Positions 5,070 through 64,000 of a stretch of DNA of 64,000 nucleotides are shown piece after piece (positions within the stretch are counted from its first letter, which is position 1; the number at the start of each line of letters is the position of its first letter). The translations under genes and the position numbers were made by a program. Origin of the DNA: Bugula neritina (lineage: Eukaryota; Animalia; Bryozoa); contig OZ037765.1 of NCBI GenBank assembly GCA_964035545.1, positions 34,347,504-34,411,503 of the forward strand, given 5' to 3'. The notes beneath the pieces are model-generated. The model saw only the letters and a program-made list of their open reading frames with translations. It ran no database searches and had not been told where the DNA came from.

Positions 5070-5246
5070 GTGTGTATTATTTAATTGTACATATATAATG
5101 ATATAGAGTAGGAGAAACTCTACTAACTATACAATATTAATTCATGACTTGGCTGTTAAAATATGATTATAGAGTGGTTTGTGCAGTACATGTGTACTTG
5201 ATATTCAGGTAGATGACAACTCTCAATACTCTGTTAGTAAAAGTAT

Positions 5247-5531
5247 ACTCTATACTATGCTATATCTACTCTATACACTATACTATATCTACTCTATACA
5301 TTGTACTATATCTGCTCTATACACTATACTATATCTACTCTATACACTATACTATATCTACTCTATACACTATACTATATCTACTCTATATACACTATAA
5401 TTATTATATCTACTATACACTATACTATATCTACTCTATACACTATACTATATCTACTCTATACACTATACTATATCTACTCTATACACTATACTATATC
5501 TACTCTATACACCATACTATATCTACTCTAT
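5247..5531. repeat. 23-bp minisatellite (CTATACACTATACTATATCTACT)n
   Basis: Direct; same unit as 54402-55070. Confidence 0.9.
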
Positions 5532-5841
5532 ACTGAAAGGAAATATTTCATGGCGAGGGCCACATGGTAAAAGTTAGCTTCGGCTGGGGGCCACAGCATC
5601 AGTAATTTAAAATAATTACTTTATTTCAAATGCCTGTGAGTCATTATACAATGAACTCCCAATAATTAGGTACTGCAAGCTGTATGTTTTCAGCATGTGT
5701 GAAAATGCGGCATTTAAAAGGCGGTTGTCCACTCGAATTCATATACCTGTGCAAATAATTTTATCTGTCAAGTTTTTGAGGGTCACATAAATGTCAGCGG
5801 GGGAGGGGGGCACATCCGGAGCCACCTATTGGACAGCCCTG
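5532..5841. mobile_element. hAT-like non-autonomous element relic (paralog ~55078-55388)
   Basis: Right end TTGGACAGCCCTG (CAGGGCTGTCCAA on the minus strand) and subterminal GGGCCAC repeats typical of hAT MITEs; left end eroded. Confidence 0.5.
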
Positions 5842-7649
5842 CTTTTGGCAACAAGCAATAAATATTTTAGGAGTTGTATTCTTTTGAAGTGAAAATTTAC
5901 AATGCTTCGGATATGGTTTTCAACAAAAATTATAGCATTTGAAATATATATAAAAGTACTTTCTTATGAAAATAACTTTCATAAGTAAATTTGACCATAA
6001 AAACTGAATTTGTGAATAATTGTAGTACGCGAACGACAGGATAAAACCATTACATATGCAGTTCCGGCGTAAAAAAGTCATGGCTACTACCAGTGAAACA
6101 ACCGCAACTACAATAAATGATACTTGGGCCATTGCTTCCTTTTCAAAGGCGAATGAATTTTTGGGATTCTCTTCATTTGACACTAGCAATGTTATTTTGA
6201 CAAATAGGCAGTCTATGTCAATATATAAGGTAACATCTTTCATTTTCTGTAATGCTAATTTGAGGAATTTTTTATAAATATAGAATTAATATTGTTGTAC
6301 CAGTAGACGTAGTAGTACAGTACTACTAGACACTAGTATAATTATAACTACAACCGGGAGTACTTATAGTAGTAGTAGTACTACTACCAGTACTAGTAGT
6401 ACTAACAGTACTACTACTAGTACTAGTACTAAGCGCTAAAACAGTAACCAGTGCCCGGTCCAGAGGCAGCAGACGTTGTAGCAGTACTACTACTAGTACT
6501 AGTGGTAGACTGGTAGGACCTGTACTTTAACTTTGACTTGCAGTAAAAGTCATACTTATTACGTAGTTACACTTTGACTTTCAGTTTTTTGCTTTTATTT
6601 CTAGTGTTCGTAGTACTAGTACAACTACAACTACAACTAAATCTAGTTTATTTCTAACAGTAACACTAACTGACTAACTCTAGTAACTTAAACTGGTATG
6701 AGTATATCTAAACTAAGATTAGTAAAAACTCAACTTTAGTTAGTTACTGTAACACTAACTGTTAGTTAGAGTCTACTTCATAACTTGTATTTGTACGAAT
6801 AGTGATAATCACAGTTTGAATAACTCAATAACTAATAACTATAAGCGAAGCTAAGTTAAAGTGTTTTACTTTTAGTAATGAAATAACAATTTACTCTTAG
6901 TGACTAAGCACTCGGTCAAAGTCATTCACGGTCGCTAAAAAGTGAAATTGGCTATAATAGTAGAGTCAATTCGGCATAGGGTTAATGCAGCTCTTAGTGA
7001 CGCCGAGTCAAACAGTTATTAATTATTATAATAATCGATGTAAACACGCAGGAATTTTTTCAACTTGATTTTGAATTGACTAATTCGTATTAACTATAAG
7101 TCTTGGTTTAAATCAGTTGATACTCGCGTTTTCATCAAGCCTTTCGGTTAATGGCACTGAGTCCTAATAAATATTTAAAGTCAATTTCATTGATAACTAT
7201 TGAGTATTGAAATGTGATGACACACATTTACTAACTTAGCCTTTAATTACTTTAAAATTTATTTCATTCATACTCAGTCGTGAGTAATTAGCATAAATCA
7301 ACCACTGTAGTTCAATTCTAAATCATACTCAATCACGATAGCCTTTATGTTTTTGCTAAACTAAATCTAAATGGCCTTAAAATTTATACCATGATGAGTT
7401 GTTTGTATCGCTTTTAAAATGATCTTAGAATTTTGTTATTGAGTTGAGGAAATAAATTTAGTTATTTCAGAGTTTCACCGGCCTGAATGAGTATTCTCTG
7501 CAGTAGAGCCTCTTTCTCATATAAATCACTGTGGAATAAATTATTACTGAAAGTAATGACTCTACATGTGTTTTTATGCTTCATTCATGTGAGTAGTTTT
7601 CAGTTTAGAATATTAATAAATACTAGAGTTTGAGTTGTGATAAACTTAG

Positions 7650-9389
7650 GTGAGTGATCAGCAGACAGTATCAAGTTGTACTCTCAAATCAGAGAGCAGT
7701 TTCTGTCTGCCTGTGGTTTATGATCACGGAGAAGAACATTATGTTGGTTTGGTTGAGAATCTTGGAAAGAAGAGACTTTGTGTCTGGACAAATGAACTTT
7801 CTAACTACAAGGACTGGAAGAAGAAACTGGTAAATCTCTCACTTTGAGTATTTCAGTTGTTTTGTGATTTTTAAGATAATATGTTTACAATAACACAATT
7901 TGTTGGTCATTTGGTGGAGTATATTTATAGCATTAGAAATGTTGAAGTGGTGAGAATATAATATAGATAATGATAACCTAATGATGATTGGTTCATAATA
8001 CAAGTGTAACTGTTGTAGTTATGAACTGAGGTGACTGAACTGGTAGAAGTAGAGAAGACAGAACCACTGGTGGTCACATCTAATAACTGTGTGTGCTGGT
8101 TGTCTCATGTGGAGGACACTTCACTGTCTGTCCATCTGCTGCCTCCAGATCTGAGAGATGCTGACGTGGAGATTAGTCAGTTTAAAAGTTACAGATGGAG
8201 TAATAGAACTGAGATTGTCTACATTGTGACTGTTGATGTAAGTATCACAATGTGTCAGTATGGTGTCACAATGTGTCAGTATGGTGTCACAATGTGTCAG
8301 TATGGTGTCACAGTAGTCAATAAAGTGTCCAATGTATCAGTATGGTGTCACAATGTGTCAGTATGGTGTCACAATGTCTCAGTAGAGTGTCACAGTAGAG
8401 TGACACAGTAAAGTGTCACAGTAGAGTGTCACAGTAAAGTGTCACAGTAGAGTGTCACAGTAGAGTGTCACAGTAGAGTGTCACAGTTGAGTGTTGCAGT
8501 AGAGTGTCACAGTAGAGTGTCACAGTAGAGTGTCACAGTAGAGTGTCACAGTAGAGTGTCATAGTTGTTGACAAGCATTATCATCATTGCTGTTGAAATA
8601 TCTACAGTTTCTGTTGTGTTATTTCTGGGACGACACCTTGTATATAAGTTACAGTTCAACGACAAGCAGGTGTTTGGCAAGTCTACGCAAGTGTTTCTCA
8701 ACTACACAGATGTGACATCAGTGTGTAGAGTTGTCCCTCATGCTGAGTCTAATTACATTGCTACTAGTGAGTCTGATACTATTGAATATATACTGTGTCT
8801 CTGTATGACGTCACCTTCACAATAACCAGTTTATCTGAAATACTCTATACAGGTGGTAAGGGTGAGATACTATACTCTACCGGTACATCTGAAGAAGTTA
8901 TTTCCTCTCTCAACTCGCAGTTTTCTACTCAGTGTGTCTCTCTTCACCTACTAGACTCTGACCAGCTTCTCATTGCAACATCTCACAGCTCTACGAATAC
9001 AGGCTAGTATAGTTTACCTTTTCTGAAGATGATTGTTCTAGTAAAGTAGTTCTACTGTAACTGTATGCCTCCTTTACTTGAATATGAGTAGATGTAAGCC
9101 AATCAGTGTAGCTGCTCTCATAGCACCTGTTTAGACGTGTCACAGCTGAAGTATGGTGACATGTGCTGGTCTTGTAGGTGTCTTACTTATATTCAGTATC
9201 ATGTTCAGAACTACGAGGATTCTAAAGAGTCTGGACAGTGAGCTCTACGGTGATAAACCTGTGACTCTTCTACCTCCATACATACTGACCCACACGGAGA
9301 GCTCATTGCAGGCTCACTCATATAAGTACAGCAAGTTGACACTAAGGAGCATGATGGGCAGTTTGAGACTGCCTGCTGATTCTGAGTTG
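7650..9389 (+). pseudogene. NOL11: Partial, disabled copy of nucleolar protein 11 N-terminal region (exons 7650-7829, 8019-8237, ~8628-8766, 8853-9002, 9178-9389)
   Basis: VSDQQTVSS...RLCVWTNE...VEKTEPLVV and ...SYKYSKLTLRSMMGSL align by recall with NOL11 (VSDQKPLGS...LRIWNNE...QGTEPLVL...YKCEVSSLAGALGKL). In-frame TGA at 8022-8024 (TCA in the paralog), CTG instead of CAG at the acceptor near 8627, and no C-terminal exons found. Confidence 0.7.
8243..8562. repeat. Compound intronic minisatellite: 21-bp (TGTGTCAGTATGGTGTCACAA) then 13-bp (CAGTAGAGTGTCA) units
   Basis: Direct; paralog ~57697-57850. Confidence 0.88.
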
Positions 9390-15987: not shown

Positions 15988-16652
15988 TAAGTGACTGAAA
16001 AGTTAGTTCACTTTTGTTGTAGTTGTGAGCAAACTACTAGAATTGTTAGTTATGAATGTGTGTGTTGTAGTTGCTAGAAAATAGTCATATTTTGCTTCAA
16101 GTTTAAGAGAGAGAACTGAGTTTGTAATGGTAGCAGAATGAATATATTTAGATTACTAATATAATACAACAAGCTATACACTAGTTTGCTAGTACTGAGT
16201 CTACTAGCCAGGTGTAGTGTGGGCGCTTGTGAGGGGGTGGGGGACAACGGAGGGAGGCACAACAGTCCAAATTTTGAACTTTTTGCTCTCATTCGTCTGT
16301 TTTTTCAAGTTACTAGTTCAATAATCTCTAGTCTAAATGCTACACCAGTTGTTTATTATAGGTATCAGTTTTCACAAAGTTTGCTAAACTCAAAATGAAA
16401 AGAATTTAGCAATTATTTGATGTTATAAAATCTCTCAGTACATCATCTTACAGGTGTTACTTGATTTTACATCCTTTCTAGAGTATATTATATGATATAA
16501 CTATATGGCTGGTATACATAGTACCAGTATAGATATGTTACAGAAATGTCAAAAGCTAGCTTTAGTTTCTAGTACTCTACCATGTATATAGTTGTTACAG
16601 ATGAGAATGAAGACTATTAAATACAACTAGAGCTGTAACCTGTGACTACAGG

Positions 16653-16689
16653 ATGGGCCAACGTAAATCTGTACCTAGAGACGAATCAA
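16653..16689 (+). pseudogene. Orphan first coding exon of the family ([12 protein letters not shown])
   Basis: Matches 2601-2637 and 43764-43800 including the GTTAGT donor; no LRR-cap exon 2 follows until 44666. Confidence 0.8.
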
Positions 16690-16884
16690 GTTAGTAAATC
16701 ATATAAATACTAAGTAACCATGGTAACTACAAAACTTTATATTTTACTTTTATGTGTTATGACATTTAGGTGTAGTAGTGGAGAAGTGGAGATAGCATAA
16801 GTTCTTTATTGTTCTTAACAAACTATAGGTTGGGGTGCGGGTTTACATTCTCACGAGAACATAACTTCTTTTGCTATATTTCTA

Positions 16885-18280
16885 CATAACTATTATACTG
16901 ACTTATATCATATTATATTATATTACATTATACCATATTATATCATATTATATTATATTATATTATATTATATTGTGTTATAGTGGTGGTCACCTTTCAC
17001 TGCCGTGTGGCCGGATCACACCATATTATATTATAGTATAGTATGTTGTTTTATTATACTGACATATATTATATTATATAACAAATATAATACTGACCTA
17101 TACTATAACATGTTGTTATTGTAACTATTACACTAACCTACATCATATTACATTGTACTATAGTATAATATTATATTAATATACCATAACACATGCAGTA
17201 CAGAGCTATAAATATACTATTATACTGACATATATATAATATTATATGACAAATATGATGCTGACCCATACTATAACATGTTATTATTGTAACTATTACA
17301 CTAACCTACATCATATTATATTGTACTATAGTATATATTATATTATATTAATTTACCATAACACATGCAATACAGAACTATAAACAACATGGCCATGTTA
17401 ATCCTTTACATACAGTTTCACTTAGTGTACAGAGTATACAGAGTAAAATATAAATATATTATGTTATATTTTATTTTCCTTAGAGCTGTGTTCTGCAGTC
17501 CACAACTGAGTAACTATAGTAACCAGAGGGAGTAGTAATGTTGTCTGTATTATGTTGTTAGTGTTTATTATATATTATATAATATTATATTATATTATAT
17601 TATAACAGGATTTGGGATTTCTGATCACCTTGACCTTTGACCGCTTTTGACATTTACAATAACTGTTGAGTGTCTTTTCCTAAACCCCCCCAATCCAAAC
17701 CTATACCCCCATCCCAACTCCCCAAACTCAATATTGTAAATGCGCCACCTATTAAATGCCATCAACTTTTTCACCGATAGTCTAAACACAATATTTTCCT
17801 AAATTCTGAGAATAGCATGTTTATTGTTATACTCTAATGACTATACTGTAGTTATATTACATGTAAACTATATACAGTATCACAGCTACATCTATTACCA
17901 GTCACTATACAGCTATTCACATCTGTCACTATAGTATGTCAACTGCAAGTTTTCCTGTTGGCTGGTTGCCAAAAGTCTTCTATAAACTAGAACTAATACC
18001 AAAGAGTATACATAGCTTGAGTGGGTATCATTATTCTAAAGGTGTCCAACGCCAATACCAAAGAGCATACATTTCAACAACCTATCATATCCTCATATAA
18101 ACACTATTACTTGCAGTGCAGCACTAACTAGCACACACTAAGAGGGAAGTCACTTATCCCTTCCTAGACTCATAGTGAGAAGATAATCAAGTTAGTTTAT
18201 GGAGGATATTATGTAACATATGCAGATGGTGAAGAGTATCTCAACTCACCTGCTGACTTCGTTTTAATTCACTGTAAGTA
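16885..18280 (+). repeat. Local duplication, paralogous to ~890-2230
   Basis: Colinear near-identity, including the 36-bp GC island and the putative 5'UTR exon block. Confidence 0.85.
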
Positions 18281-43763: not shown

Positions 43764-45925
43764 ATGGGTCAACGTAAATCTGTTCCTAAAGACGAATCAA
43801 GTTAGTAAATTATATAAATATAAATACTACCAGTAGCTGCAGAACTTTTACATTATACGTTTTTATGAGTTATATGACATTCAGTTGCAGCACTAGAGAA
43901 ATTGAAGTAGCATTAGTTTTATAATTCTCTTAAAAAAGTTTGCATTGGGGTGTGGTTAAAAATCTCATGAGAACATAACTCTATTTGTTACATTTCTGAT
44001 CTAGAAACACAAGCTTTGTTCAACTTTTTATTACTTTGCACCTAACTTTGTATTCACCACAACTGGGTGCATTATTGTATAATGTTATATACTGAAGCTT
44101 ATATTATAATAATATATTAAAGTATAATATATTGTTATACTGACATATATATTATATTATATCACAAATATGATGCTGACCTATACTATAAAGTGTTATT
44201 ATTATTTTATATTATATTGTAGCTATTATACTAACCTACATCATGTTATGTTACAATAATTATAGTAACCTTAGTTAACTATTATAACATGCACATTTTA
44301 CTGACCTATATTGCTTTATATTACATTATATTACATTATATTACATTAGAATACTATAACACATACTGTACAGAAGTATAAACAACATGGCTACCCTTTA
44401 CCTGTCATCTGCTATAGCTGACGTCTGCACCAGTTACAGGGATGAGTCATACTCTTAGGTATAAACTGACAAAGTGGGCACAACTTGAATATATATTCAG
44501 ATTTTATCACAGGATTTCAATTTAATTATCTGTAATTTTAAGTAGTTAAAATATAAAATGTTTATTGTGTAACTATTGCCAGTTATGGTTCTATGCATTG
44601 ATAGTGTTTACAAACATTCTATTATTATAAAAACTTTTATTTATAAAGTTGCACATATTTTATAGAGAAGTACGAGGTGTGGTTCAACACATCCAGTATA
44701 GATGGAGCTGATGATGAGTGGATGTGGAATAGTACTAGATCCTACACTATAGAAGAGATCAGAAATAAAAGTAGACATCATACAGTTACTCATGTTGAAC
44801 TGGTGTATGACATTCCTCCAAATATCAACAAACTGTTTCCTCATCTCACACATCTGAAGGTATCTGGAGTAGACAGTAATGCTAACTGGACCAGGTATTA
44901 TGTTGTTATAATTTATAACTATATTCATAAGTGAGATATTATCTTGTAGTAGAATGTGGAGTAATCTCCCCTCACAAAAACACTAGCTTTAGTAACAACT
45001 TTTGTATTATTTACCTTATTTATTGTATTTCTATTTATGTTTCAATTTAAAGTAAGTTGGTGTCATTCAAACATATCAATAAACATATAATGTATAATAG
45101 TATGTGATAATTATGTAGAATTGAATATACTGTTACACCTGTATATAATTATTATGTTACAGCATATCTTCACTGAAGAATCTTGAGGTATTGAATATAT
45201 CAGATAATAACCTATCTGAAGATCTACCTGACAATATATTCACATCCTTACTATCATTGAGAGAGTTGAACATGGAGAACTGTAAACTGTCAACTCTACC
45301 AAACAGGTGTGGATTATATTATACATTATGAAGTTATCTGCACTATCTTTATTGAGTCAACTAGACTCTGTGTATATGATACGTCACAAGTCAATTATTG
45401 TATTCTTTTCTATTAGATATGTACTCAGATAGAAATGGTATATCAACTTCTCACTTATTCCTCTAATAAATTATTTTGCTGTGTAACAGTTTATATTGGC
45501 ACCAGGTATAAAATTTGTTATAATATAGAATTATATCCATATAAGTTAGATACTCTCTTGTAGCTGAGTGTAATGTGAAGCTATTATACATTTCTCTTTA
45601 AAATAATCCGAGCCTAAGCAGCAACTGCTGTATTATTTATCTGACTTTTAGTGGTCAGATCAAGAGTTAAATAAAACTAAATTATTCTTATTCAATAATA
45701 TTATTTCTATATATAGTAGGTCAACTTACTACCTTTTCGTTATCTTACAGCATATCTTCACTGAAGAATCTTGAGGTATTGAATATATTTGATAATAAGC
45801 TATCTGAAGGTCTACCTGACAATATATTCACATCCTTACTATCATTGAGAGAGTTGTACATGAAGCACTGTAAACTGTCAACTCTACCAAACAGGTGTGT
45901 ATTTTATTGTAGTGTAGAATAATAT

Positions 45926-46008
<83 letters not shown>

Positions 46009-49000
46009 TTATATATTTTTATATTTTTATATTTATATATATACGTATACATATACGTATATATATAATATACATGCCAATTATCTACTGAATATTTTAA
46101 AAATAGCATAAATTACGTAGTATTACTATGCCTATTTGCATCCAATTTACTAGTTTTACATTTATGGCAACTGTAATGTATTTTGTTTAAAATGGTTATT
46201 GCAAGCATTATTCAATTATTCATATATTCACATTGTAATCACAGCGAAACTTGAACTTTATAGCTTTGTATTTAAGTGCATGAGTGAGTTTTAAATTTTC
46301 TTTTAGGTTTATATGCATAAAAAATGTGTTTAAAATATTTACCAATAAACAAAACTAAAAAGATTTACACATAAAAAAAATAATATAATAATAAAAGTGG
46401 CAAAATTTTCTCTTTATAACTTATAATGGCGCCCATATGATTCCCTAAGATTTCCTAATAGCGGCACTCTTAATGTATATACCACTCTGGACCTTAACTA
46501 TGCTGTGGATGTACAGTTCTAACTGATATAACTTATTACTGTGATGAAAGTCTATATTTCTTCTTCTGGTGGACAGAGTGACTTGTTTCTTGTTATTTAT
46601 AGTAGTCAAAGTTCCTTCTGTAACATGGCTACATAAGGGTGTGATCTCTAATACCCGCATAACAACATTCTTCAAGAAACGCAGACTATATATGAATATT
46701 GCAGTTTTCATGTTCCGTCACTATAAACATGTTAATAATCTCAGCACTACATGTATATATGCTAAAAGTTCCACCATGCTTTCATATAACATGTATATTA
46801 TGTTTCATACAGCATATCTTCACTGAAGAATCTTGAGGTATTGAATATATCAGGGAATAACCTCTCTGAAGGTCTACCTGACAATATATTCACATCCTTA
46901 CTATCATTGAGAAAGTTGGACATGGAGATCTGTCAACTGTCAACACTACCAAACAGGTGTGTATTATATTATATATTATGCAGTTATCTGCACTATCTTT
47001 ATTGAGTCAACTAGACTCTATGTATATTATACGTCACAAGTCAATTATTGCATTCTATTCTATTAGATGTACTCAGATAGAAATGGTATATCAACATCTC
47101 ACTTATTCCTCTAATAAATTATTTTGCTGTGTAACAGTTTATATTGGCACCAGGTATAAAATTTGTTATAGTATAAAATTATATCCATATAAGTTAGATA
47201 CTCTCTTGTAGCTGAGTGTAATGTGAAGCTATTATATATTTCTCTTTCTCTTTGAAATAACCCCAGACTTAGTAGCAACTGCTGTATTATTTATCTGACT
47301 TTTAGTGGTCAGATCAAGAGTTAAATAAAACTAAATTATTCTTATTCAATAATGATACTTTTATATAGTAGGTCAACTTACTACCTTTTCGTTATGTTAC
47401 AGCATATCTTCACTGAAGAATCTTGAGGTATTGAATATATCATGGAATAACCTATCTGAAGGTCTACCTGACAATATATTCACATCCTTACTATCATTGA
47501 GAGAGTTGGACATGGAGTGCTGTAAATTATCAACTCTACCAAACAGGTGTGTATTATATTATAGTGTAGAATTATACTGTAATATGTATAATATATAAAC
47601 ATATGATTAATATAATTGTGTAGAAACTTATGACATATTATTTTACCATAATCAGAGTGACTTATAATATTATAATTATGTCTATATTGAGATATAATAT
47701 AACGTTATACTAAGATATAATATAATATTATACTGAGATTAATTATAATGTTATTCTGAGATATATTATAATACTATACTGAGATATAATATAATGTTAT
47801 ACTGAGATATATTATAATGTTATATTAAGATATATTATAATGTTATACTGAGATATATTATAATATTATACTGAGATATATTATAATATTATACTGAGAT
47901 ATATTATAATGGTAGTCAATCCATAGTTACTGGGTGATGCATTGTATCATTTACTTTAATTTATCAAATACCTGGTAGTAGAACTCCTAACATAGCTATA
48001 AAATAAATATAATAGTAAACTACAATTATTCCTAACACCTATACATAAAGCTATAAATATAATTGCAGAATCCTATATACTATTTATTATAATGGTATAT
48101 ATTAGAAAGTATAATATGAAATTATATTATTTATTTTTGTACAAAACAGTATTTCTATTTCTTTCAGCATGCAGAGTCTACAGAAGTTAGAGCTACTGTA
48201 CATAGCAGGCAATAAGTTCACCAGTTTACCATCTCCTGCGTACACACTGAGTAGTTTGCAAAAACTGAATATATCTTCCAACTACTCCCTGACATCCTTA
48301 GATCCTGAGATACTACAGCTAACTCAACTTCGTACACTGTATGTTAGAAATTGTGATGCTCTCACCTCTCCTCCACTAGAAGTATGTGAGAGAGGAGTAG
48401 ATGCTGTGAGACAATACTACACAGACTTGGCTAAAGGAGCTGGTAGAAGTCTTCCATTCGCTACTATAGCTGTGCTGGGTAATACTATGGCTGGGAAGAC
48501 CAGTCTAATCAGAACATTACAGAATGCTGACAGAAAGAGAGTTCTGACTAACAGAAGGCCAGATGCTGTGAAAGATGAGACAACAAAGGTGTTTAATGTT
48601 GAAGAGGTGGGGGTGGATGGTACAGTACTTCGTGTCATTGATATGGGAGGCCAGGAGGTCTACCATATCACCTATCAACTGACACTGAGACAGAACTGTA
48701 TTCCAGTCATAGTAGTCAACATGGAACAGTACGAAGAGATCTTAAATGATTCAACACACAGAGAAGCTGTTAGAAGATTAGCTTTTGATTACATGTCTCA
48801 CCTCTATCTGGCTAACCCAATTCTGGGTGCTCCAAAACTTATCTTCACACATAAAGATAAGTTTCAAAATGCAGAATTTCAGGAGCTTCGAAAGAACTTT
48901 CTAGAAAGTTCGAATCAACTGTGTGAGGAAATGATTAGGGAAGAGAAAGCATTGGGTAGAGAATTTGCTCAAATCAAACATTTTAGTGAATCAGCTGGAA

Positions 49001-52000
49001 GAGTCTTTCCTGGTAAGGACATTTATGAGGTGGGGAAAGATGATAAGTATGAAGTGTTTGACCTGATCAAGGAGTCTCTTCTTCAAAGCAGTCACCATTT
49101 TGTGAAACCTTTACCTCTGGTCTGGGAGGAAGTAAATGAAAAAGTGCTGTCTATTCCCTCTGTGTACAGCACCTTTGATGAGATACTCAAATACGTGCAA
49201 ACCGAACTTCAACAAATTGAGTCAAGTCAGCTGGACATAATCCTCACTTACATGCATGACTGCGGCAAAGTATTGTGGTATAAAAATATCAGCTCTCTCC
49301 GGCCATACGTATTCCACAAGATTTCACAAGTCACCAAACTTCTCTGTGTCTTGTATCATCATGATGCTAACATCTGGCAGAGTAGAGTTAACAAGTTCCA
49401 GCCGTGCTATTCAAAGGATGGGATGCCTGTTGAGAAGCAGGACTTTGAGGAATCCGTTAATCATTTCACTGACACTGGTTTGATGATGCAATCTCTTCTT
49501 GTCTATTTGATTCAAAATGAAACAATATTCCACAGTTTTGAGAATGTTGAAGTTGCTATCTGCTTACTCCAGACGTTCCGTTTGCTGCACGGTCCAATAC
49601 ATAGCAAGTCTGAAGACCCATGGTTCATTGTACCTCAGTTTGCTAAGAACTACTACAGCACTTCTTACTCACCACCCAAAGACATGCTGCTTCATGTTGA
49701 GACACAATTCAATGGTCTAGCCCTGCCACACTATGTCTACCACCAAATGACAGTCGGCTTGTTGGAGTTGTTTCCCGGTGATTCTCCCAGGATAAAAGTG
49801 AGAAGAAATGGAGCCAATGTCTATCAAGATGGAATCTACACACAGCTGGTACACGACCATAAATCTAGAAAAATTTCACTCCACGTGTCATCTGATGCTG
49901 CAAACATCAGCAGAATGTGGGAGAGACTCATCACCACCAACAACAACATCCTTAGACATGTTCTACAAACTTGGAAAGCAACTAGACCAGTCACTACATG
50001 CTACTGTGCTCACTGTCTTCTGCTAGGACTTCCTTGTCCTAAGAAAGTGCAAAGACCTCAATGGTGTCTTCGTTCTTTACAACATTCCACACCGAGTTCC
50101 AGACTGTGTAGTGGAACTTCAACAACTCTGTGTGGTGATGAGGAGATCCCAAGTGCTCTGCTCTACCCATGTATGTTTATTTGTATTGTAGTGCAATGCC
50201 TGTAAAATTATATTTTACTGCAATTTACCAAATGTGTGCATTTATTTGAAAAGGAATTATTCATTGATATAACTGTAATGCGGTTTCACGACACCCGACT
50301 GTATAAATTTCTAAGCAATTCATTGTTTCAGGTGAACCACTGTCTGAACGAGAAGCTGATAAGTTGGAGAAGTTTGTGAATGAACTGAATGTTCGAAGAC
50401 CTCAAGAAAGATTAGCTAATTCTGGTGAATACATTATGACCAGTTTTTACAAGCTTGTGTTCTTTAAAAGTTTTACTTTATTTAAAAATCTTATCACAAG
50501 AAATTCCTGCATTGCATCTGAATACCAAACTGCTAGCCGTCATAGTATTATGTTTTTTACTTATTCCTTGTGTAGCTAAGTATTGTAGTGAGTAGTGCAA
50601 GTACAAATACAGGAATCGCCCTCTCCCTACTCTTGGAATACTTAGACTCTTATGTAGCAACCAATTAGCAGCTCCGGAAGATATGCTTCCGATTCACGTG
50701 ACACTTCCCGGGTTATTAACATTATATCACGTTGTTGTAAGCGGAGGCTTGTAGTAGTAACATGTGTTAGTAGTTGACTCTTGTATAGGATAATTTGATG
50801 TGATGTTTGGTTTATGCTTTATTGTGGATAATAAATATAATTACTCGACAGCTACCCTAGTAATTGATAACAGAATAACCAGCTAACTATACGCAAGTAA
50901 ATAACTCACGCTCAGTAATTGCACAAATTACTACAGTATTGTAGTCGGTTTATACTTTATAGCCGCCGAAAGTAGCCAATCAGATCTTTTGACCACCGCA
51001 ATAACAGCCAATGACAATCTCAGTGATCTTTCTGATGATGAGGAGAATCTGTACCCTGATGGAAAGGAAGTTGAAGAGATGAAGTTTATAAGACTCAGAC
51101 TGAATCCTACCAGTAACCTAACGATAAGACAGCTGTTCTCAAACACTGACAAGGTGATCGCTTCTTATATATGGCTATGTCCTTTATTTTTGCCAGTTGT
51201 TTAGTTCAGCAGTAACAAGTATTTCTCTGTTACATCCAGGTGTTTACTATGACTAGAAAAAGAGGAAGAGCTCTGATAATAAACAACAGGAGCTTTGATA
51301 AGAGACCAGATTTGTGTAGGAAAGGTTCAGATGTGGATGTTGAGAATATGTCTGCCATGTTGAAATCTCTCAAGTTTGATGTTGTGACACACACAGACCT
51401 GAAGGCTGAGGTATGTTTTGCTGCTGCTTTACTTATCAAGATAAAAATGGAACTTTTTGTTAGTTTAAAAAAAGCATCCATATACAGTATTTTACTGTCC
51501 CATACTTTCTAGGAAATGCTGTCCGCTGTTCAATCTGAGGTGGAAAAAGAAGAACACGAAGATCTGGGATGTCATGTGTTGGTTATCATGACTCATGGAG
51601 GACTAAACAACCACATCTATGGTACAGACCTGAAACGAGTGAAACTAACAGATGTGTATGATATTCTGACCCCTTTGAACTTCCCAGGAATGGCTGGCAA
51701 ACCAAAGGTTGTTATACTGGAAGTCTGCAGTGGAGGTAATCAGTTGATACAACATTTGTGGTTACTTCGGAGCTGTGTTCTTTTGACTGTTAGTAAATGA
51801 TTAAATGTGTCTATATTGCTGTTCATTTATGCTATTAACTAATCATGTGGGTATTTAAAGTTGCGTTTATACCTTCACGATTTTCGGTCAAAATTTCAAT
51901 TTGGCCGGGTTGAAATTTCTCCGAGTTGCATTGCATTGTAAAAGCCACCCGTTGAAATTTTTGTACTGCAATAACTTAATCGGCCAATTTTAGAATAGGA

Positions 52001-53730
52001 GTAATAACTCCTTGTAAACATTGTTATTTAGTTATTACTTTGGCGATTAGACAACGTACTTATACGGTTATAATTATATAGCCTACGCTTTCTCAATTAT
52101 CGCTTTTATGCTTTCCGCTTCACTAATTCACGACATTTACAAAGGGCATCAAATAGCTATTATGCGAGTCAAATTTCAATTTCAGAAAGTGAGCAACCAC
52201 ATCAATATGATTTCAACGAGTTTAAGTTTGACTATAAAGGGGTACCCGGAAAAGCGTTATTAACCTAAACTCGGTACTTTTTTCAGCAGAGGTATAAACG
52301 CAACTTTAGACTAAAGCTGATAACTGCTGAAGTAGAGTAGGGCCAAGCGTGGCGTGACGTGCTAGAAAACCCGTTTAGGCTAAGAATGGGTTTTCATGCG
52401 TCTAACATGCTGAGGGAGAAGTCCGGCAAGCTTGTGCATGTTTGATCTAATTGGCTTATTATAAATTAGCGAGAACTTTTCTTTTATTTTAATTCAAAGT
52501 TTAGCTTTTAGCGAACTGAATTGAAACAGTTTCCTATATATCTAAAGTCGATGACGTAGAACAAATGTCTGAAGGCGAGCAGTAAAGTTTAAAGCTAACA
52601 TCATTAGCAAATAAATTTCTGCACTCGAAACTCACGCATTATGGCCCTCCGCTAGAGTCTTCATAGCATTTATTTAATACAAATTATACATGAGTGAAAT
52701 AAAGTACATAAGTGTGAAGAATTACATAACATGACAAATACTAAGCATGCAAGCTAACTTTCTAAGTGCTAATACCCAACTGTGTTCTGCTGATGCACTC
52801 TGCTAATGATCCTGTACCATTAGTTCCATCCCAAAGCATTAGCTCCATCCCAAGCATTAGCTTCATCCCAAAGCATTAACCACAGCTTCTGATGCAGCAA
52901 TGTATTAGGTATTAGCTGAGTGTATCGTAGATGATGCAACATTAGAGTAGCAGAGTTAGGGTAGAAGTTGTCTTTTCACCACAATATACCCACTTTCAGA
53001 GTTTTCTACATGTTTTTCTATTTGACATTATTTTTACTCATCATATTAAATAAATATAATATTATGAGATCTGTATTACAGAGAGAAGTGATTATGGCCA
53101 AAAAGGTATAGACAGATTTGATATCGGAGAATCACAGAAGGAAGGGGAGAGTATCTCTCCTCCACTTGCTAAAGTTCCTGGAGACAAAGATGCTGAGGCT
53201 ATGAATAGACTGAACTATGATGACCTGCTAGTAGTGAAATCTAGCATGGAGTGTAAGTAACACACATGTAATAGAGTATTAGGTTACACAGATGCTATAC
53301 ATACACTGATGTTATTTATAATTGTAGAATAATTCACATTACTGACTCTACTTGTAGCATTCATAGCAAAGGTTCACCCTGTGTATGGATCACTAATGAT
53401 TAGAGCTCTTGTATCTTCCATGTATAAACATGCCTGTCACCATGACCTCTACACTATATTCAAACAGGTGAGTATATTGTTACTATGTTAGAGGTGTTTG
53501 GAGGCGTGTCATAAATAGGTTATTTAGAATCATCTGGTACATAATAGTCAGATTTCACTGTTGAGTTGCTAAACATTCTTCAGGTACAGACTAAAGTGAG
53601 AAAACTGTGCTTAGATAAAAATCTAGAGAGTGGAGGACAGTTGGTCGTAGTCTGGGATACTCTCACTCATATGAGAAAACTTTACCTGTTTCCTAGGTTT
53701 AATGGCCACAAAAGAGAAGATGACTCTTAG
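43764..53730 (+). CDS. Myristoylated LRR-Roc-COR-caspase (Roco-caspase fusion), 1316 aa. join(43764-43800,44666-44894,45163-45306,45751-45894,46813-46956,47403-47546,48168-50170,50332-50424,50963-51153,51240-51410,51513-51735,53082-53252,53358-53467,53584-53730)
   Basis: All 13 introns are GT-AG, all phases are compatible, total 3951 nt with no internal stop, TAG at 53728-53730. Domain motifs are listed in the sub-features. Confidence 0.88.
45163..47546 (+). CDS. Four 144-nt two-LRR cassette exons (45163-45306, 45751-45894, 46813-46956, 47403-47546)
   Basis: Each reads [48 protein letters not shown], bounded by ACAG|C and AACAG|GTGTG, phase 2-2. Confidence 0.93.
45927..46000. repeat. (TA)n microsatellite in the intron between LRR cassettes 2 and 3
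   Basis: Direct. Confidence 0.95.
47690..47910. repeat. ~23-bp AT-rich intronic minisatellite (TATTATAATGTTATACTGAGATA)
   Basis: Direct, degenerate. Confidence 0.75.
48168..50170 (+). CDS. Large exon: last LRRs + Roc GTPase + COR (MFHAS1/LRRK-like Roco core)
   Basis: [22 protein letters not shown]-to-Roc hinge; P-loop GNTMAGKTS (48478-48504); DMGGQEVY (G3); FTHKD (Roco-type G4); COR motifs [27 protein letters not shown]; C-terminal CYCAHC cysteine cluster. Confidence 0.93.
51240..53730 (+). CDS. Caspase (peptidase C14A) domain, five exons
   Basis: [21 protein letters not shown] (His 51594), [13 protein letters not shown] (Cys 51726), then p10 [47 protein letters not shown]. Confidence 0.92.
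51859..52305. mobile_element. Kolobok-like MITE in a caspase intron
   Basis: TIR AGTTGCGTTTATACCT / AGGTATAAACGCAACT, flanked by TTAA / TTAG. Confidence 0.7.
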
Positions 53731-54401
53731 AGTAGATTATGGAGAGAATGACAATTTAGACATAATATATTCATATGTTCTGGTTATCTTAGCTCCATAG
53801 TTATGTATGTATACAAATATATTGTATGCAGTTCTTCTAGTTTAGATGTGTCATAGTAACACTACAGAGTAGTTTATTCATTACAATGTCATATGATAAA
53901 CAGGTATACAGTGTTATACTATTATTCTGTTTTACTTCTGTTTGCTAGTTTATATATTATAACCTGAGTGGTGTACGCTAGCAGTTCTCATGTTACTCTT
54001 ACAATAGACTAAGTTTTATCTTAACTAGCTGAACCGAGGACACCAGGCTATAGACTATTACACTGTTATTTGGTTTATTACAGCTTTTCTTAGTATCTGT
54101 CACTTTATAACCAGTTGACAACACACTGATTTAGAACAGTGTAATAATCATGACGATAGTTCACCTGCTTAAAATAAACGAAACCATATTTTCTTGGCTA
54201 ATTTATAGTTACACCAATTTTAGTATTATTTAGTTGACTAATGTTACATGAAAGACCATCGTTTAGCAGTTTAATCCTCTTATTTCTATTCAAGTTGCTT
54301 GTTTTTGAGGATCAGTCAAACTGGACTTGTACTTTATACCATTTATGCAGTTTTTATATCATAAGTGATTGTGTGATTTTATAAATATATTATAATATTA
54401 C

Positions 54402-55070
54402 TCTGTACACTATACTATATCTATTTTATACTCTATACAATATCTACTCTATACACTATACTATATCTACTCTATACACTATACTATATCTACTCTATAC
54501 ACTATACAATATCTACTCTATACACTATACTATATCTACTCTGTACACTATACTATATCTACTCTATAATACACTATACTATATCTACTCTATACACTAT
54601 ACTATATCTACTCTAAAATACACTATACTATATCTACTCTATACGCTATACTATATCTACTCTATACCCTATACTATATCTACTCTATAATACACTATAC
54701 TATATCTACTCTATACACTATACTATATCTACTCTAAAATACACTATACTATATCTACTCTATACGCTATACTATATCTACTCTATACCCTATACTATAT
54801 CTACTCTATAATACACTATACTATATCTACTCTATACACTATACTATATCTACTCTAAAATACACTATACTATATCTACTCTATACGCTATACTATATCT
54901 ACTCTATACCCTATACTATATCTACTCTATACACTATACTATATCTACTCTATACACTATACTATAACTACTCTATACACTATACTATATCTACTCTATA
55001 CCCTATACTATATCTACTCTATACCCTATACTATATCTACCCTATATACTATACTGTATTAACTCTATAC
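54402..55070. repeat. 23-bp minisatellite with a higher-order pattern of 23/25-bp variants
   Basis: Direct; same unit as 5247-5531. Confidence 0.93.
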
Positions 55071-57130
55071 TATATATCGAGGGCTACTGAAAGGGAATAT
55101 TTCATGGCGAGGGCCACATTGTAAAATTTAACTTGGGCTGGAGGCCACAGCATCTGCAATTCAAAATAACTTTATTACAAATGCCTGTGAGTCATTACAC
55201 AATGAAGTCCCAATAATTAGGTACTGCAAGCTTCATGTTTTTAGCATATATAAAAATGGGGCATTTAAAAGGCTGTTGTCCACTCGAATTCATATACCTG
55301 TGCAAATAGTTTTATCTGTTATGCCTTTGAAGGCCACATAAATGTAGGAGGGGGGAGGCACATCCAGGCCACCTGTTGGACAGCCCTGCTTTAGGCAACG
55401 AGCAATAAATATTTTAGGAGTTGTATTCCTTTAGAGTGAAAATTTCCTTTGCTTCGGATATGGTTTTCAACAAAAAATTAAAACATTTGAAAATATATAT
55501 AAAAATACGCTCTTATAAAAAACTTTTATAAATAAATTCGATTGTAAAAACTGAATTTGTTAATAATTGTAGTACGCGAACGACAGGATAAAACCATTAC
55601 ATGTGCAGTTCCGGCGTAAAAAGTCATGGCTACTACCAGTGAATCAACCGCAACTGCAATAAATGATACTTGGGCCATTGCTTCCTTTTCAAAGGCGAAT
55701 GAATTTTTGGGATTCTCTTCATTTGACACTAGCAATGTTATTTTGACAAATAGGCAGTCTATGTCAATATATAAGGTAACATATTTCATTTTCTGTAATG
55801 CTGATTTGAGGATTTTTTTATAAATATAATAAAATTAATATTGTACTAGTAGTAGTACAGTACTACTAGACACTAGTATGATTATAACTACAACCAGGAG
55901 TACTTTTAGTAGTATTAGTACTACTACTAGTACTAGTAGTACTAACAGTACTACTACTAGTACTAGTACTAAGCGCTAAAACAGTAACCAGTGCCCGGTC
56001 CAGAGGCAGCAGACGTTGTAGTACTACTACTACTAGTACTAGTGGTAGACTGGTAGGACCTGTACGTTGACACTGCAGTAAAAGTCATACTTATAACGTA
56101 GTTACACTTTGACTTTCGATTTTTTGCTTTTATTTCTAGTGTTCGTAGTACTAGTAAAACTTCTACTAAATCTAGTTTATTTCTAACAGTAACTGGTGTG
56201 AGTATATCTAAACTAAGATTAGTAAAAACACAAATTTAGTTAGTTACTGTAACACTAACTATTATTTAGAGTCTACTTCATGACTTGTATTTGTACGAAT
56301 AGTGATAATCACAGTATGAATAACTCAATAACTAATAACTTTAAGCGAAGCTAAGTTAAAGTGTTTTAGTAAAATTAAATAACAACTTACTCTTACTGAC
56401 TAAACACTCGGTCAAAGTCATTCACGGTCGCTAAAAGTGAATAGTGGTATAATAGTAAAGTCAATTCAGCGTAAGGCTAATGCAGCTCTTAGTGACTTAT
56501 TAATTATTATGAAAATCGATGTAAACACGCAATAATTTTTTCAACTTGAATTTGAATTGACTAATTCGTAATAACTATAAGTATTGGATTAAATCAGTTG
56601 ATACTCGCGTTTTAATTAAGCCTTTCGGTGAATGGCACTGAGTCCTAACACATATTTAAAGTAAATTTCAGTGATAACTATTGAGTATTGAAATGTGATG
56701 ACACACATTTACTAACTTAGCCTTTAATTACTTTAAAATTTATTTCATTCATACTCAGTCGTGAGTAATTAGCATAAATCAACCACTGTAGTTCAATTCT
56801 AAATCATACTCAATCACGATAGCCTTTATGTTTTTGCTAAACTAAATCTAAATGGCCTTAAAATTTATACCATGATGAGTTGTTTGTATCGCTTTTAAAA
56901 TGATCTTAGAATTTTGTTATTGAGTTGAGGAAATAAATTTAGTTATTTCAGAGTTTCACCGGCCTGAATGAGTATTCTCTGCAGTAGAGCCTCTTTCTCA
57001 TATAAATCACTGTGGAATAAATTATTACTGAAAGTAATGACTCTACATGTGTTTTTATGCTTCATTCATGTGAGTAGTTTTCAGTTTAGAATATTAATAA
57101 ATACTAGAGTTTGAGTTGTGATAAACTTAG

Positions 57131-58494
57131 GTGAGTGATCAGCAGACAGTATCAAGTTGTACTCTCAAATCAGAGAGCAGTTTCTGTCTGCCTGTGGTTT
57201 ATGATCACGGAGAAGAACATTATGTTGGTTTGGTTGAGAATCTTGGAAAGAAGAGACTTTGTGTCTGGACAAATGAACTTTCTAACTACAAGGACTGGAA
57301 GAAGAAACTGGTAAATTTCTCACTTTGAATATTTCAGTTGTTTTGTGATTTATAAGATAATATGTTTACAATAACACAATTTGTTGGTCATTTGGTGGAG
57401 TATATTTATAGAATAGATGAAGAATGATAACCTAATGATGGTTGGTTCATAATACAAGTGTAACTGTTGTAGTTATCAACTGAGGTGACTGAACTGGTAG
57501 AAGTAGAGAAGACAGAACCACTGGTGGTCACATCTAATAACTGTGTGTGCTGGTTGTCTCATGTGGAGGACACTTCACTGTCTCTCCATCTGCTGCCTCC
57601 AGATCTGAGAGATGCTGACGTGGAGATTAGTGAGTTTAAAAGTTACAGATGGAGTAATAGAACTGAGATTGTCTACATTGTGACTGTTGATGTGAGTATC
57701 ACAATGTGTCAGTAAGGTGTCACAATGTGTCAGTATGGTGTCACAATGTGTCAGTATGATGTCACAATGTGTCAGTATGGTGTCACAATGTGTTAGTATG
57801 GTCTCACAATGTGTCAGTATGGTGTCACAATGCGTCAGTAAGGTGTCATGGTGTGTCTGTAAGATGTCACACTTAACCAGTAGAGTGTCAATATATACTG
57901 TGTCTCTGTATGACGTCACCTTTACAATAACCAGTTTATCTGAAATACTCTATACAGGTGGTAAGGATGAGATACTATACTCTACCGGTACATCTGAAGA
58001 AGTTATTTCCTCTCTCAACTCACAGTTTTCTACTCAGTGTGTCTCTCTTCACCTACTAGACTCTGACCAGCTTCTCATTGCAACATCTCACAGCTCTACG
58101 AATACAGGCTAGTATAGTTTACCTTTTCTGAAGATGATTGTTCTAGTAAAGTAGTTCTACTGTAACTGTATGCCTCCTTTACTTGAATATGAGTAGATGT
58201 AAGCCAATCAGTGTAGCTGCTCTCATAGCACCTGTTTAGAGGTGTCACAGCTCAAGTATGGTGACATGTGCTGGTCTTGTAGGTGTTTTACTTATATTCA
58301 GTATCATGTTCAGAACTACGAGGGTTCTAAAGAGTCTGGACAGTGAGCTCTACGGTGATAAACCTGTGACTCTTCTACCTCCATACATACTGACCCACAC
58401 GGAGAGCTCATTGCAGGCTCACTCATATAAGTACAGCAAGTTGACACTAAGGAGCATGATGGGCAGTTTGAGACTGTCTGCTGATTCTGAGTTC
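57131..58494 (+). pseudogene. NOL11: Second partial NOL11-like copy; one internal exon deleted
   Basis: Exons 57131-57310 and 57473-57691 are open (LSTEVTEL); the GRHLVYKL exon is missing (junction ~57890); no C-terminal exons found. Confidence 0.7.
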
Positions 58495-62478: not shown

Positions 62479-63839
62479 ATGGGTCAACGTAAATCTCTAC
62501 TTCGACCCAGACCTCCACCTCAAACTCCACCTAGACCTCCACCTACACCTCCAGCTCCACTTCCATTTCGACCTCCACTTAGTAAATCTCTACCTCAAGC
62601 TACGCCTCCACTTTCTGGTCAGTCTGTGTCAAGTTAGTAAATTATATAAATACAAGTACTTCAACTGCTAACTACAGAAATTTCATACTTTTTTTTATGT
62701 GTTATGACATTAAGGTGCAGTAGTGGAGAAGTTGAGGTAGCCTAAGTTCTTTATTGTTCTTAATAAATTATACGTTGAGGTGCAGGTTTATATTCTCACC
62801 AGAACATAACTTGTCTCTTACATTTCTTCACTACAGTTTCATTACTTTGCACCTAGCTCTGTGTTGACCATATCTGAGTATTATATTGCTTTTGTTTATT
62901 ATGTGATGTTATATACCTGCTTATATTATATACTATAACTATTATACTATAACAGTATAACTATTATACTATAACTATTATACTATAACTATTATACTAT
63001 AACTATTATATTATAACTATTATACTATAACTATTATACTATAACTATTATACTGACTTATATCATATTATATTATATTACATTATATTATATTATATTA
63101 TATTATATTTTATTATATTATATTATATTATATTATAGTGGTGGTCACCTTTCACTGCCGTGTGGCCGGATCAAATCATATTATATTATAGTATAGTATG
63201 TTGTTTTATTATACTGACTTATATTATATTATATAACAAATATTATGCTGACCTATACTATAAAGTGTTATTATTATTTTATGTTATATTGTAGCTATTA
63301 TACTAACCTACATCATGTTATGTTACAATAATTATAGTAACCTTAGTTAACTGTTATATAACATGCACATTTTACTTACCTATATTACATTATATTACAT
63401 TATATTAAATTATTATATATTATTATACTATAAAATATACTGTACAGAGGTATAAACAACATGGCTACCCTTTCAACTGTCAGAATATATCACAGGATGC
63501 ATTTTGAAGTTATAAAATATCCAAGTTTACTTCAATACTGTTTATAGTGTTGAGACACTCTGTTATTTGATATCAAAGTTATTATTTATAAAATGGTGAA
63601 TATTTTGTAGAGAAGTACAAGGTGTGGTTCAACACATCCAGTATAGATGGAGCTGGTTATGGGTGGATGAAGAATGATACTACATCCTACACTATAGAAG
63701 ATATCAATGATATAAGTAGACATCATACAGTGACTCATGTTATACTGGAGAATGACATTCCTCCAAATATCAACAAACTGTTTCCTCATCTCACACATCT
63801 GAGGGTATATGGAGTATACAGCAATGCTGACTGGACCAG
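62479..63839 (+). CDS. 5' part of a further paralog (exon 1 62479-62632 with proline-rich insert, exon 2 63611-63839); continues beyond the window
   Basis: MGQRKSLLRPRPPP...GQSVS-KKYKVWFNTSS...DWT; same splice sites and phases as the intact copy; the following intron matches 44895 onward up to the window end. Confidence 0.85.
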
Positions 63840-64000
63840 GTATTATGTTGTTATAATTTATAACTATATTCATAAGTGAGATATTATCTTGTAGTAGAAT
63901 GTGGAGTAATCTCCCTTCACAATAACACTAGCTTTAGTAACAACTTTTGTATTATTTACCTTATTTATTGTATTTCTATTTATGTTTCAATTTAAAGCAA

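Follow-up and report, generated by a model that had tools for sequence, protein, structure and literature searches.

Whether an animal can carry a sensor, a nucleotide switch and a caspase on one polypeptide, and what such a protein would be for, is the question raised by a gene at positions 43764-53730 of a 64,000-nucleotide stretch of the genome of the bryozoan Bugula neritina (GenBank assembly GCA_964035545.1, contig OZ037765.1, 34,347,504 to 34,411,503 of the forward strand; the whole stretch is hereafter the window). A first-pass annotation, made from the sequence alone, had read this gene as a chain of leucine-rich repeats (LRRs), a Roc GTPase, a COR domain and a caspase, and had proposed it as an immune receptor. 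The single-chain architecture and the receptor-like character have both held up, through RNA joins, the pairing of every Roc-COR exon of the family with a caspase exon, comparable chains in two other lineages and diversifying LRR faces. Because the domains lie in a single frame, with RNA joins and consistent pairings, single chains in Watersipora and Branchiostoma, diversification of the LRR face, tandem clusters and mixed caspase types, we favor with moderate confidence the reading that the protein is a polymorphic single-chain intracellular sensor-protease of a large recombining bryozoan family, used in immunity or allorecognition.

One reading frame from repeats to protease

Joining the 14 exons and reading the frame gives 3951 nucleotides (nt), encoding 1316 amino acids (aa) and a stop codon. 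All 13 introns are GT-AG with matching phases and there is no internal stop, so that the intact spliced frame of the first-pass annotation stands, and a spliced one-frame gene with LRRs (about 11 in total), Roc, COR and a caspase-family domain is confirmed as real. Transcription was assessed with contigs from four public runs (X1-X4; four studies), which were compared with 48100-54000 at a likeness threshold of 93%; the runs were taken as RNA by an automatic guess, and their GT-AG joints argue for RNA. Three junctions had been singled out earlier for such a check. Two of these were recovered as predicted, 50170/50332 (exon 7/8) in X2 and X4 and 51153/51240 (exon 9/10) in all four runs, but 50424/50963 (exon 8/9) was seen, in X2 and X4, solely as an in-frame variant 9 nt shorter. 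Further downstream the exon 10/11 join was found in a variant form in X2 and X4, 51735/53082 (exon 11/12) in X4, 53252/53358 (exon 12/13) in three runs and 53467/53584 (exon 13/14) in at least two. In X4 the exon 7/8 and 8/9 joins have an equal depth of 4.91, compatible with a single contig running from COR into exon 9. From COR as far as the final exon, the joins are supported at the level of the family, by short contigs none of which spans the whole gene, and the family is transcribed in ordinary RNA samples of all four studies.

Scanned exon by exon, the gene has LRR matches in Pfam. The switch region lies in exon 7, where Pfam recognizes Roc (E 1.8e-6) and, weakly, COR-A (E 0.0067). Besides the P-loop GNTMAGKT, Roc has a G3 motif DMGGQ at aa 439 and a G4 motif THKD at aa 508-511, and motifs G1-G4 are kept with minor variants in all 30 paralogs inspected, in each of which exon 7 also ends at a GT donor of the same phase. 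An AlphaFold model of exon 7, with a predicted local distance difference test (pLDDT) score of 91, matches LRRK1 (1.7e-23), LRRK2 and the Chlorobium Roco protein (8.9e-21) over 650-750 columns, and the isolated COR structure 3dpt at E 2.9e-10; LRRK1 and LRRK2 are the closest solved structures, and the identity to solved structures is 13-15%. As this model matches the Roco structures along its length, the presence of a COR domain directly after Roc is confirmed at the level of predicted structure, and the protein is assigned to the Roco family as a predicted GTPase. No NACHT or NB-ARC ATPase was matched by Pfam in exon 7 or the other exons scanned; by its predicted Roco fold the protein is not an NLR, yet it is plausibly NLR-like in its working. 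The end of COR (50005-50133; exon-7 residues 613-655) carries a CxHC motif and a later Cys, the first two Cys being invariant in 55 relatives and the CxHC shared with amphioxus members, and this element is a possible zinc site between COR and the effector.

Between COR and the caspase lie about 95-100 aa encoded by exons 8 and 9. Because these linker exons have no Pfam match up to E 1, a CARD or DED appears to be absent here, as first noted. The final 50 aa or so of the spacer are kept in Watersipora relatives, for which reason it is apparently not wholly a free linker. The caspase itself begins in exon 10, with Peptidase_C14 matches in exons 10 (E 1.8e-10) and 11 (E 8.9e-11), and the p10 is placed in exons 13 and 14 by alignment to a Watersipora relative. 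The model of that relative matches caspase-3 structures (E 1e-15), by way of which a complete p20 plus p10 fold is predicted. Taken singly, exons 2, 8, 9, 12, 13 and 14 have no domain recognized by Pfam. At the other end of the protein, MGxxxS is the consensus for N-myristoylation, and the N-terminal MGQRKS fits it, making a membrane anchor through Gly2 possible. The start ATG sits one base past a splice acceptor, and a further exon upstream of exon 1 is therefore probable.

Exons and selected sites of the Roco-caspase gene (window coordinates)
Feature	Coordinates	Strand	Content
Exon 1	43764..43800	+	start codon; N-terminus MGQRKS
Exon 2	44666..44894	+	N-terminal cap, ~76 aa, no Pfam match
Exon 3	45163..45306	+	144-nt phase-2/2 cassette, two LRRs
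Exon 4	45751..45894	+	144-nt LRR cassette
Exon 5	46813..46956	+	144-nt LRR cassette
Exon 6	47403..47546	+	144-nt LRR cassette
Exon 7	48168..50170	+	667 aa: ~three LRRs, Roc GTPase, COR-A/COR-B, terminal CxHC...C element
Roc P-loop GNTMAGKT (aa 385-392)	48478..48501	+	in exon 7
Exon 8	50332..50424	+	charged linker
Exon 9	50963..51153	+	acidic linker and conserved pre-p20 segment
Exon 10	51240..51410	+	predicted caspase p20 start; Arg1070 (Arg179 equivalent) at 51318-51320
Exon 11	51513..51735	+	p20; His1128 (51594-51596), Glu1170 at Gln283 position (51720-51722), Cys1172 (51726-51728)
Exon 12	53082..53252	+	intersubunit linker with several Asp, then p10 start
Exon 13	53358..53467	+	p10; Val1237 at Arg341 position (53372-53374), Ser1243 at Ser347 position
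Exon 14	53584..53730	+	p10 end and stop codon

Two intron stretches have a high contig depth, 51843-52630 in intron 11 (all four runs) and 50661-50857 in intron 8 (X1 only), and are probably multi-copy repeats or mobile elements. An AT microsatellite and tandem repeats of 19, 23 and 121 nt occupy 45928-46072, 47671-47911, 52818-52878 and 54386-55076, in introns and the 3' flank; related tandem repeats recur close to paralogs and could promote unequal crossing over.

A large bryozoan family and its relatives

A search of the genome (216 Mb, 321 contigs) with exon 7 gave 156 candidates, of which 66 were scored; these are 64-100% identical to the query and 64 of them lack a stop. A second query added 26 Roc-COR exons, bringing the family to at least 92. 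Downstream of every one of the 92, on the same strand and no more than 20 kb away, lies a caspase exon; the median distance is 1.6 kb in the first 66, where the chance of pairing is about 0.006 each. The genes are clustered: contig 1 has about 20 in the neighborhood of the window, and contig 6 about 30. The closest named relatives are from bryozoans, and a database protein of Bugula neritina matches eight of the loci at 75-82%.

Variation at the sensor end was measured on 24 intact 144-nt cassettes from the window and from fetched paralog loci. The leucine scaffold is near-invariant, and four face positions take 7 to 12 residues each. Over the 12 x-positions of the LxxLxLxxNxL segments the mean entropy is 1.62 bits versus 0.34 elsewhere, and the ratio of nonsynonymous to synonymous differences (pN/pS) is 1.41 (set against the all-site pS, 1.94; codon bootstrap 1.15-3.05) versus 0.42 elsewhere. 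These values are good evidence that diversification is focused on the predicted ligand-face positions of the LRRs, and weaker evidence for positive selection on that face. In the present gene each of exons 3-6 is a 144-nt phase-2/2 cassette with two LRRs, and exons 5 and 6 with their intron are a 91.5% identical tandem duplicate of exons 3 and 4 (45150-45962 versus 46796-47614).

The effector end varies in a different manner. Among the 30 Roc-COR exons closest to that of the present gene, half are followed by a caspase of its own type (type A; 71-100% identical to it in exon 11) and half by another (type B; 42-47% in exon 11 and 34-43% in exon 10), and no exon-7 column distinguishes the two sets of heads. 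On a tree of the LRR and Roc parts the caspase-type label needs 10 changes, as against 10.3 when shuffled; the COR tree calls for 5, of which well-supported branches force no fewer than 3. Three other genes encode an exon 13 protein 100% identical to that of the present gene, though their Roc-COR exons are just 83-89% identical to its own. Since the two caspase types are scattered over near-identical Roc-COR heads, the simplest reading of these sequences would be repeated exchange or gene conversion between head and caspase tail, the breakpoints falling within exon 7 or shortly beyond it. No gene carrying both caspase types was seen within the window.

Neighboring copies in the window include a truncated paralog at 2601-5070 (+), which has exon 1, exon 2 and two LRR cassettes and then passes into sequence resembling the region 3' of the main gene (5246-8392 and 54779-57848 are 91% alike). 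The segment has the look of a tandem duplicate from which an internal deletion removed the Roc-COR-caspase part, and an LRR-only decoy or an alternative 5' module is a candidate reading of the same segment. A relic of exon 1, with an ATG at 16653, lies at 16374-17150 (+); its flanks are 78-86% similar to the main gene's, and no exon 2 follows. The next paralog starts at 62479-64000 (+), where its exons 1-2 lie. Behind its 84% identical Roc-COR exon (L011) comes a caspase of type B with HACSG, and directly adjoining genes therefore carry unlike caspase types.

Single chains of the same composition are annotated in Watersipora subatra (RefSeq XP_067947674.1, XP_067948342.1 and about six more, which bear the automatic name 'MFHAS1 homolog', a name only) and in several species of Branchiostoma (C3XQ16 and about 11 further proteins with LRR, Roc, COR and caspase); the homology searches were word-limited, and this spread is that of bryozoans and Branchiostoma among the matches obtained. 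On caspase trees a single origin of the bryozoan and amphioxus fusions has an approximately unbiased (AU) test p of 0.32. The amphioxus protein C3XQ16 (BRAFLDRAFT_67388) has the same CxHC end of COR. Other amphioxus Roco proteins (P0063, P0093 and P0241) end in a GT4 glycosyltransferase, an OTU protease, or GT4 with a death domain and a caspase; by their predicted domains, animal Roco effectors vary as has been described for bacteria. The LRR-Roc-COR core and its predicted fold are shared by the bryozoan protein with LRRK1/2, MFHAS1, DAPK1 and the Chlorobium Roco protein. In the vertebrate Roco proteins, which are conserved and single-copy, the enzyme is a kinase or is absent.

Among described systems, the amphioxus 'LRRs-caspase' models of Zhang et al. 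2008, for which a direct link from recognition to apoptosis was proposed (PMC2575513), likewise have LRRs and a caspase in one chain and the same proposed function. The text of that paper does not contain Roc or GTPase, and its models may correspond to the database proteins; amphioxus copies number about a dozen across species, compared with at least 92 in the one bryozoan genome. Kaur et al. 2021 catalogued LRR-AP-GTPase-COR-caspase proteins in bacteria, where the effector is of at least 24 kinds and caspase is one of them (PMC8195603). These counter-invader AP-GTPase (Roco) proteins share with the bryozoan gene fast-evolving LRRs, an AP-GTPase, COR and a C-terminal effector on one chain, as well as the presence of several paralogs per genome, but they are prokaryotic and predicted only (PMC8195603). 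Whereas bacteria vary the kind of effector, the bryozoan effector is predicted to be an animal-type p20/p10 caspase and its variation is among caspase types; the likeness noted is one of architecture. Brown algal ROCO genes too encode their LRRs in symmetric phase-2 exons, which undergo shuffling and diversifying selection, though as 72-nt single-repeat exons rather than the 144-nt two-repeat exons seen here, and the paper describing them does not contain the word caspase (PMC11378527). Both the bacterial and the brown algal proteins have been proposed as anti-invader receptors (PMC8195603, PMC11378527).

It had been anticipated that the architecture might turn out to be common and already characterized, and the first half of this has come true, given Watersipora, Branchiostoma and published work (PMC2575513, PMC8195603), yet not the second: in the literature searched, which covers few subscription journals, we found neither a functional test of any LRR-Roc-COR-caspase member nor a paper on its bryozoan expansion. 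The architecture alone has precedent; the surprise lies in the scale of the expansion, in the mixing of caspases over Roc-COR heads, in the changed pockets and in the members without a Cys.

The caspase active site

The His-Cys dyad is kept, His1128 and Cys1172 aligning with the caspase-3 His and Cys, but the pentapeptide reads EVCSG where canonical caspases have QACRG. In caspases the P1 Asp is held by Arg179, Gln283 and Arg341, and in para- and metacaspases the S1 pocket is acidic, with Asp at 283, Asp or Glu at 341 and Leu at 179 (PMC2064784). Here Arg179 is kept (Arg1070), Gln283 is replaced by Glu (Glu1170) and Arg341 by Val (Val1237), and Arg at the Val1237 codon in paralogs confirms the register of the alignment at position 341. 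The Glu at 283 is acidic, but Val at 341 and the retained Arg179 depart from the metacaspase pattern. The pocket therefore appears neither caspase-like nor metacaspase-like, and its P1 preference is unreadable from sequence. As both QACxG and a basic S1 pocket are lacking, we class the domain as a predicted caspase-family protease and not as a canonical Asp-specific caspase. The 'complete caspase' of the first-pass annotation is thus borne out in fold and dyad and fails at the S1 pocket, and its 'executioner' presupposes canonical Asp-specific activity, which sits poorly with the replacement of two of the three S1 residues in the present copy. The Watersipora and amphioxus fusions retain Gln283 and Arg or Lys at 341, the amphioxus members keeping QACRG and the Arg341 equivalent.

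A census of active sites, tallied by hand from genome pattern searches that return 20-35 matched letters per site, made 54 Roc-linked caspases readable: 27 have Glu-x-Cys, 13 His-Ala-Cys, 4 Gln-Ala-Cys and 10 no Cys, its place being taken by Ser in 8 and by Ala and Tyr in the others. At position 341 at least three genes besides the present one have Val, five have Ser and many have Arg; the Arg-His-Pro pattern gave 80 hits against 86 for its control, and was used only in register with exon-13 matches. Copies lacking the Cys (EASSG, EASNG, EAASG and ETYKG; C6:2.6-6.2 Mb, C8:8282663 and C1:32588483) are candidate pseudo-caspases, and on contig 6 they are interleaved with Cys-bearing copies. That type B caspases are those without the catalytic Cys was considered and ruled out, since type B reads HACSG or QACSG.

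These data bear on the best-surviving alternative, that the protease of the present copy is weak or dead and the protein a sensor serving as a scaffold or as a cFLIP-like tuner that heterodimerizes with active paralogs through COR and the caspase interface. The Glu and Val substitutions would fit this, as would the loss of the catalytic Cys in 10 of the 54 copies read in a family whose scored Roc exons are nearly all stop-free; Val, Ser and Arg at 341 among close paralogs are what relaxed constraint predicts. Against this, the present copy keeps both His and Cys, 44 of the 54 retain the Cys, and Glu at 283 is common to at least 31 Cys-bearing caspases on five contigs. The identical exon 13 proteins under diverged Roc-COR exons also suggest constraint or recent exchange rather than decay. 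We consider this alternative unlikely, although it stands ahead of those discussed below.

Competing readings and a proposed mechanism

COR dimerizes Roco proteins, and initiator caspases are switched on by induced proximity. Under the sensor-protease reading the resting protein would be autoinhibited and possibly anchored to a membrane through Gly2. A non-self or allogeneic ligand would bind the LRR face and change the nucleotide state of Roc, upon which the COR-mediated dimer would rearrange and the two tethered caspase domains would pair; COR would thereby do what a CARD or DED adaptor does for an initiator caspase. Once paired, the protease, its P1 preference probably moved off strict Asp, would cut targets and so bring about the death of the cell or zooid, or its defence. 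Paralogs without the Cys might act as cFLIP-like partners or decoys, in the way that dead paralogs occur alongside active ones in caspase-8/cFLIP. The logic of a repeat sensor, a nucleotide switch and a proximity-activated caspase is that of NLR inflammasomes and the Apaf-1 apoptosome, which differ in using a STAND ATPase in place of the Roco GTPase and a CARD, DED or PYD adaptor in place of a single chain.

The earlier proposal that Roc-COR dimerization directly switches the caspase on is not straightforward. The bacterial Roco protein is a dimer when empty or GDP-bound and a monomer when GTP-bound (PMC5714945), so that the coupling could take either sign. Either a resting dimer would keep the proteases apart until activation rearranges it, or the resting state would be a GTP-bound monomer, with hydrolysis or ligand clustering driving the pairing. 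On a more specific and decidedly tentative version of the sensor-protease reading, the family would be a set of combinatorial innate receptors in a colonial animal. Recognition would depend on shuffled two-repeat LRR cassettes and the threshold on the conserved Roc-COR part, and the choice of substrate would follow from interchangeable caspase modules that differ in their S1 pockets (283 being Glu, His or Gln, and 341 Val, Ser or Arg) and in part lack the Cys. The present copy would be active, non-Asp-preferring and directly Roco-gated.

Several points weigh against the sensor-protease reading. The ligand, the direction of coupling to GTP, the catalytic activity and cell death are all things that we infer; a dimer characteristic of the GDP-bound or empty state does not map simply onto activation by dimerization (PMC5714945); and the replacement of two of three S1 residues may mean a low activity. 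As to pN/pS, the values are uncorrected counts between pairs of exons that are related and recombine, and the LRR and Roc tree has 15 of its 27 inner branches open, a poor resolution that can by itself scatter labels. The RNA support comes from short contigs at 93% likeness, probably derived in part from paralogs or alleles, and covers the joins from exon 7 onward.

It is improbable, in our estimate, that the protein is instead a guard or bait, in which a parasite that tampers with the protein, by cutting its charged linker or modifying its GTPase, frees the caspase from restraint by LRR-Roc-COR. A resting Roco dimer (PMC5714945) would suit such a restraint, and the length and charge of the ~95-aa linker and the variation in mid-COR (identity 0.64-0.78 across exon-7 residues 401-520) are also in its favor, but diversification precisely at LRR face positions fits direct binding, and the Roc motifs are strongly conserved. 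We give slightly less credence still to a non-immune role, either in colony tissue turnover such as polypide regression and metamorphosis or in LRRK-type vesicle traffic. Transcription in ordinary samples and the closeness of LRRK1 and LRRK2 among solved structures are compatible with it, as is the response of brown algal ROCO genes to other stresses (PMC11378527); at least 92 tandem-clustered paralogs with hypervariable LRR faces and mixed effectors are, in contrast, the pattern of conflict genes and not of housekeeping or developmental ones. That two adjacent genes, one for LRR-Roc-COR and one for a caspase, were falsely joined is very improbable, for even though no single read covers the whole gene, the exon 8/9 join is seen just as the shorter variant and some Watersipora models show Roc and the caspase as separate proteins, the exon 7 donor has one phase in all paralogs inspected, the 7/8, 8/9 and 9/10 joins are all present in RNA contigs (with equal depth in X4 for 7/8 and 8/9), and full-length single chains are annotated in Watersipora and amphioxus.

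If the sensor-protease reading is right, the protein would offer a natural one-protein proteolysis readout for a question posed by LRRK2, that of how the nucleotide and dimer cycle of Roc-COR reaches a C-terminal enzyme, and would bear on the question of direct ligand binding by Roco LRRs. How caspase specificity and pseudo-caspases evolve may be followed in the natural series that the diverse S1 pockets form together with the paralogs lacking the Cys. For the bryozoans themselves the family is a candidate for their self/non-self receptors, and may represent a GTPase-based animal parallel to NLR inflammasomes.

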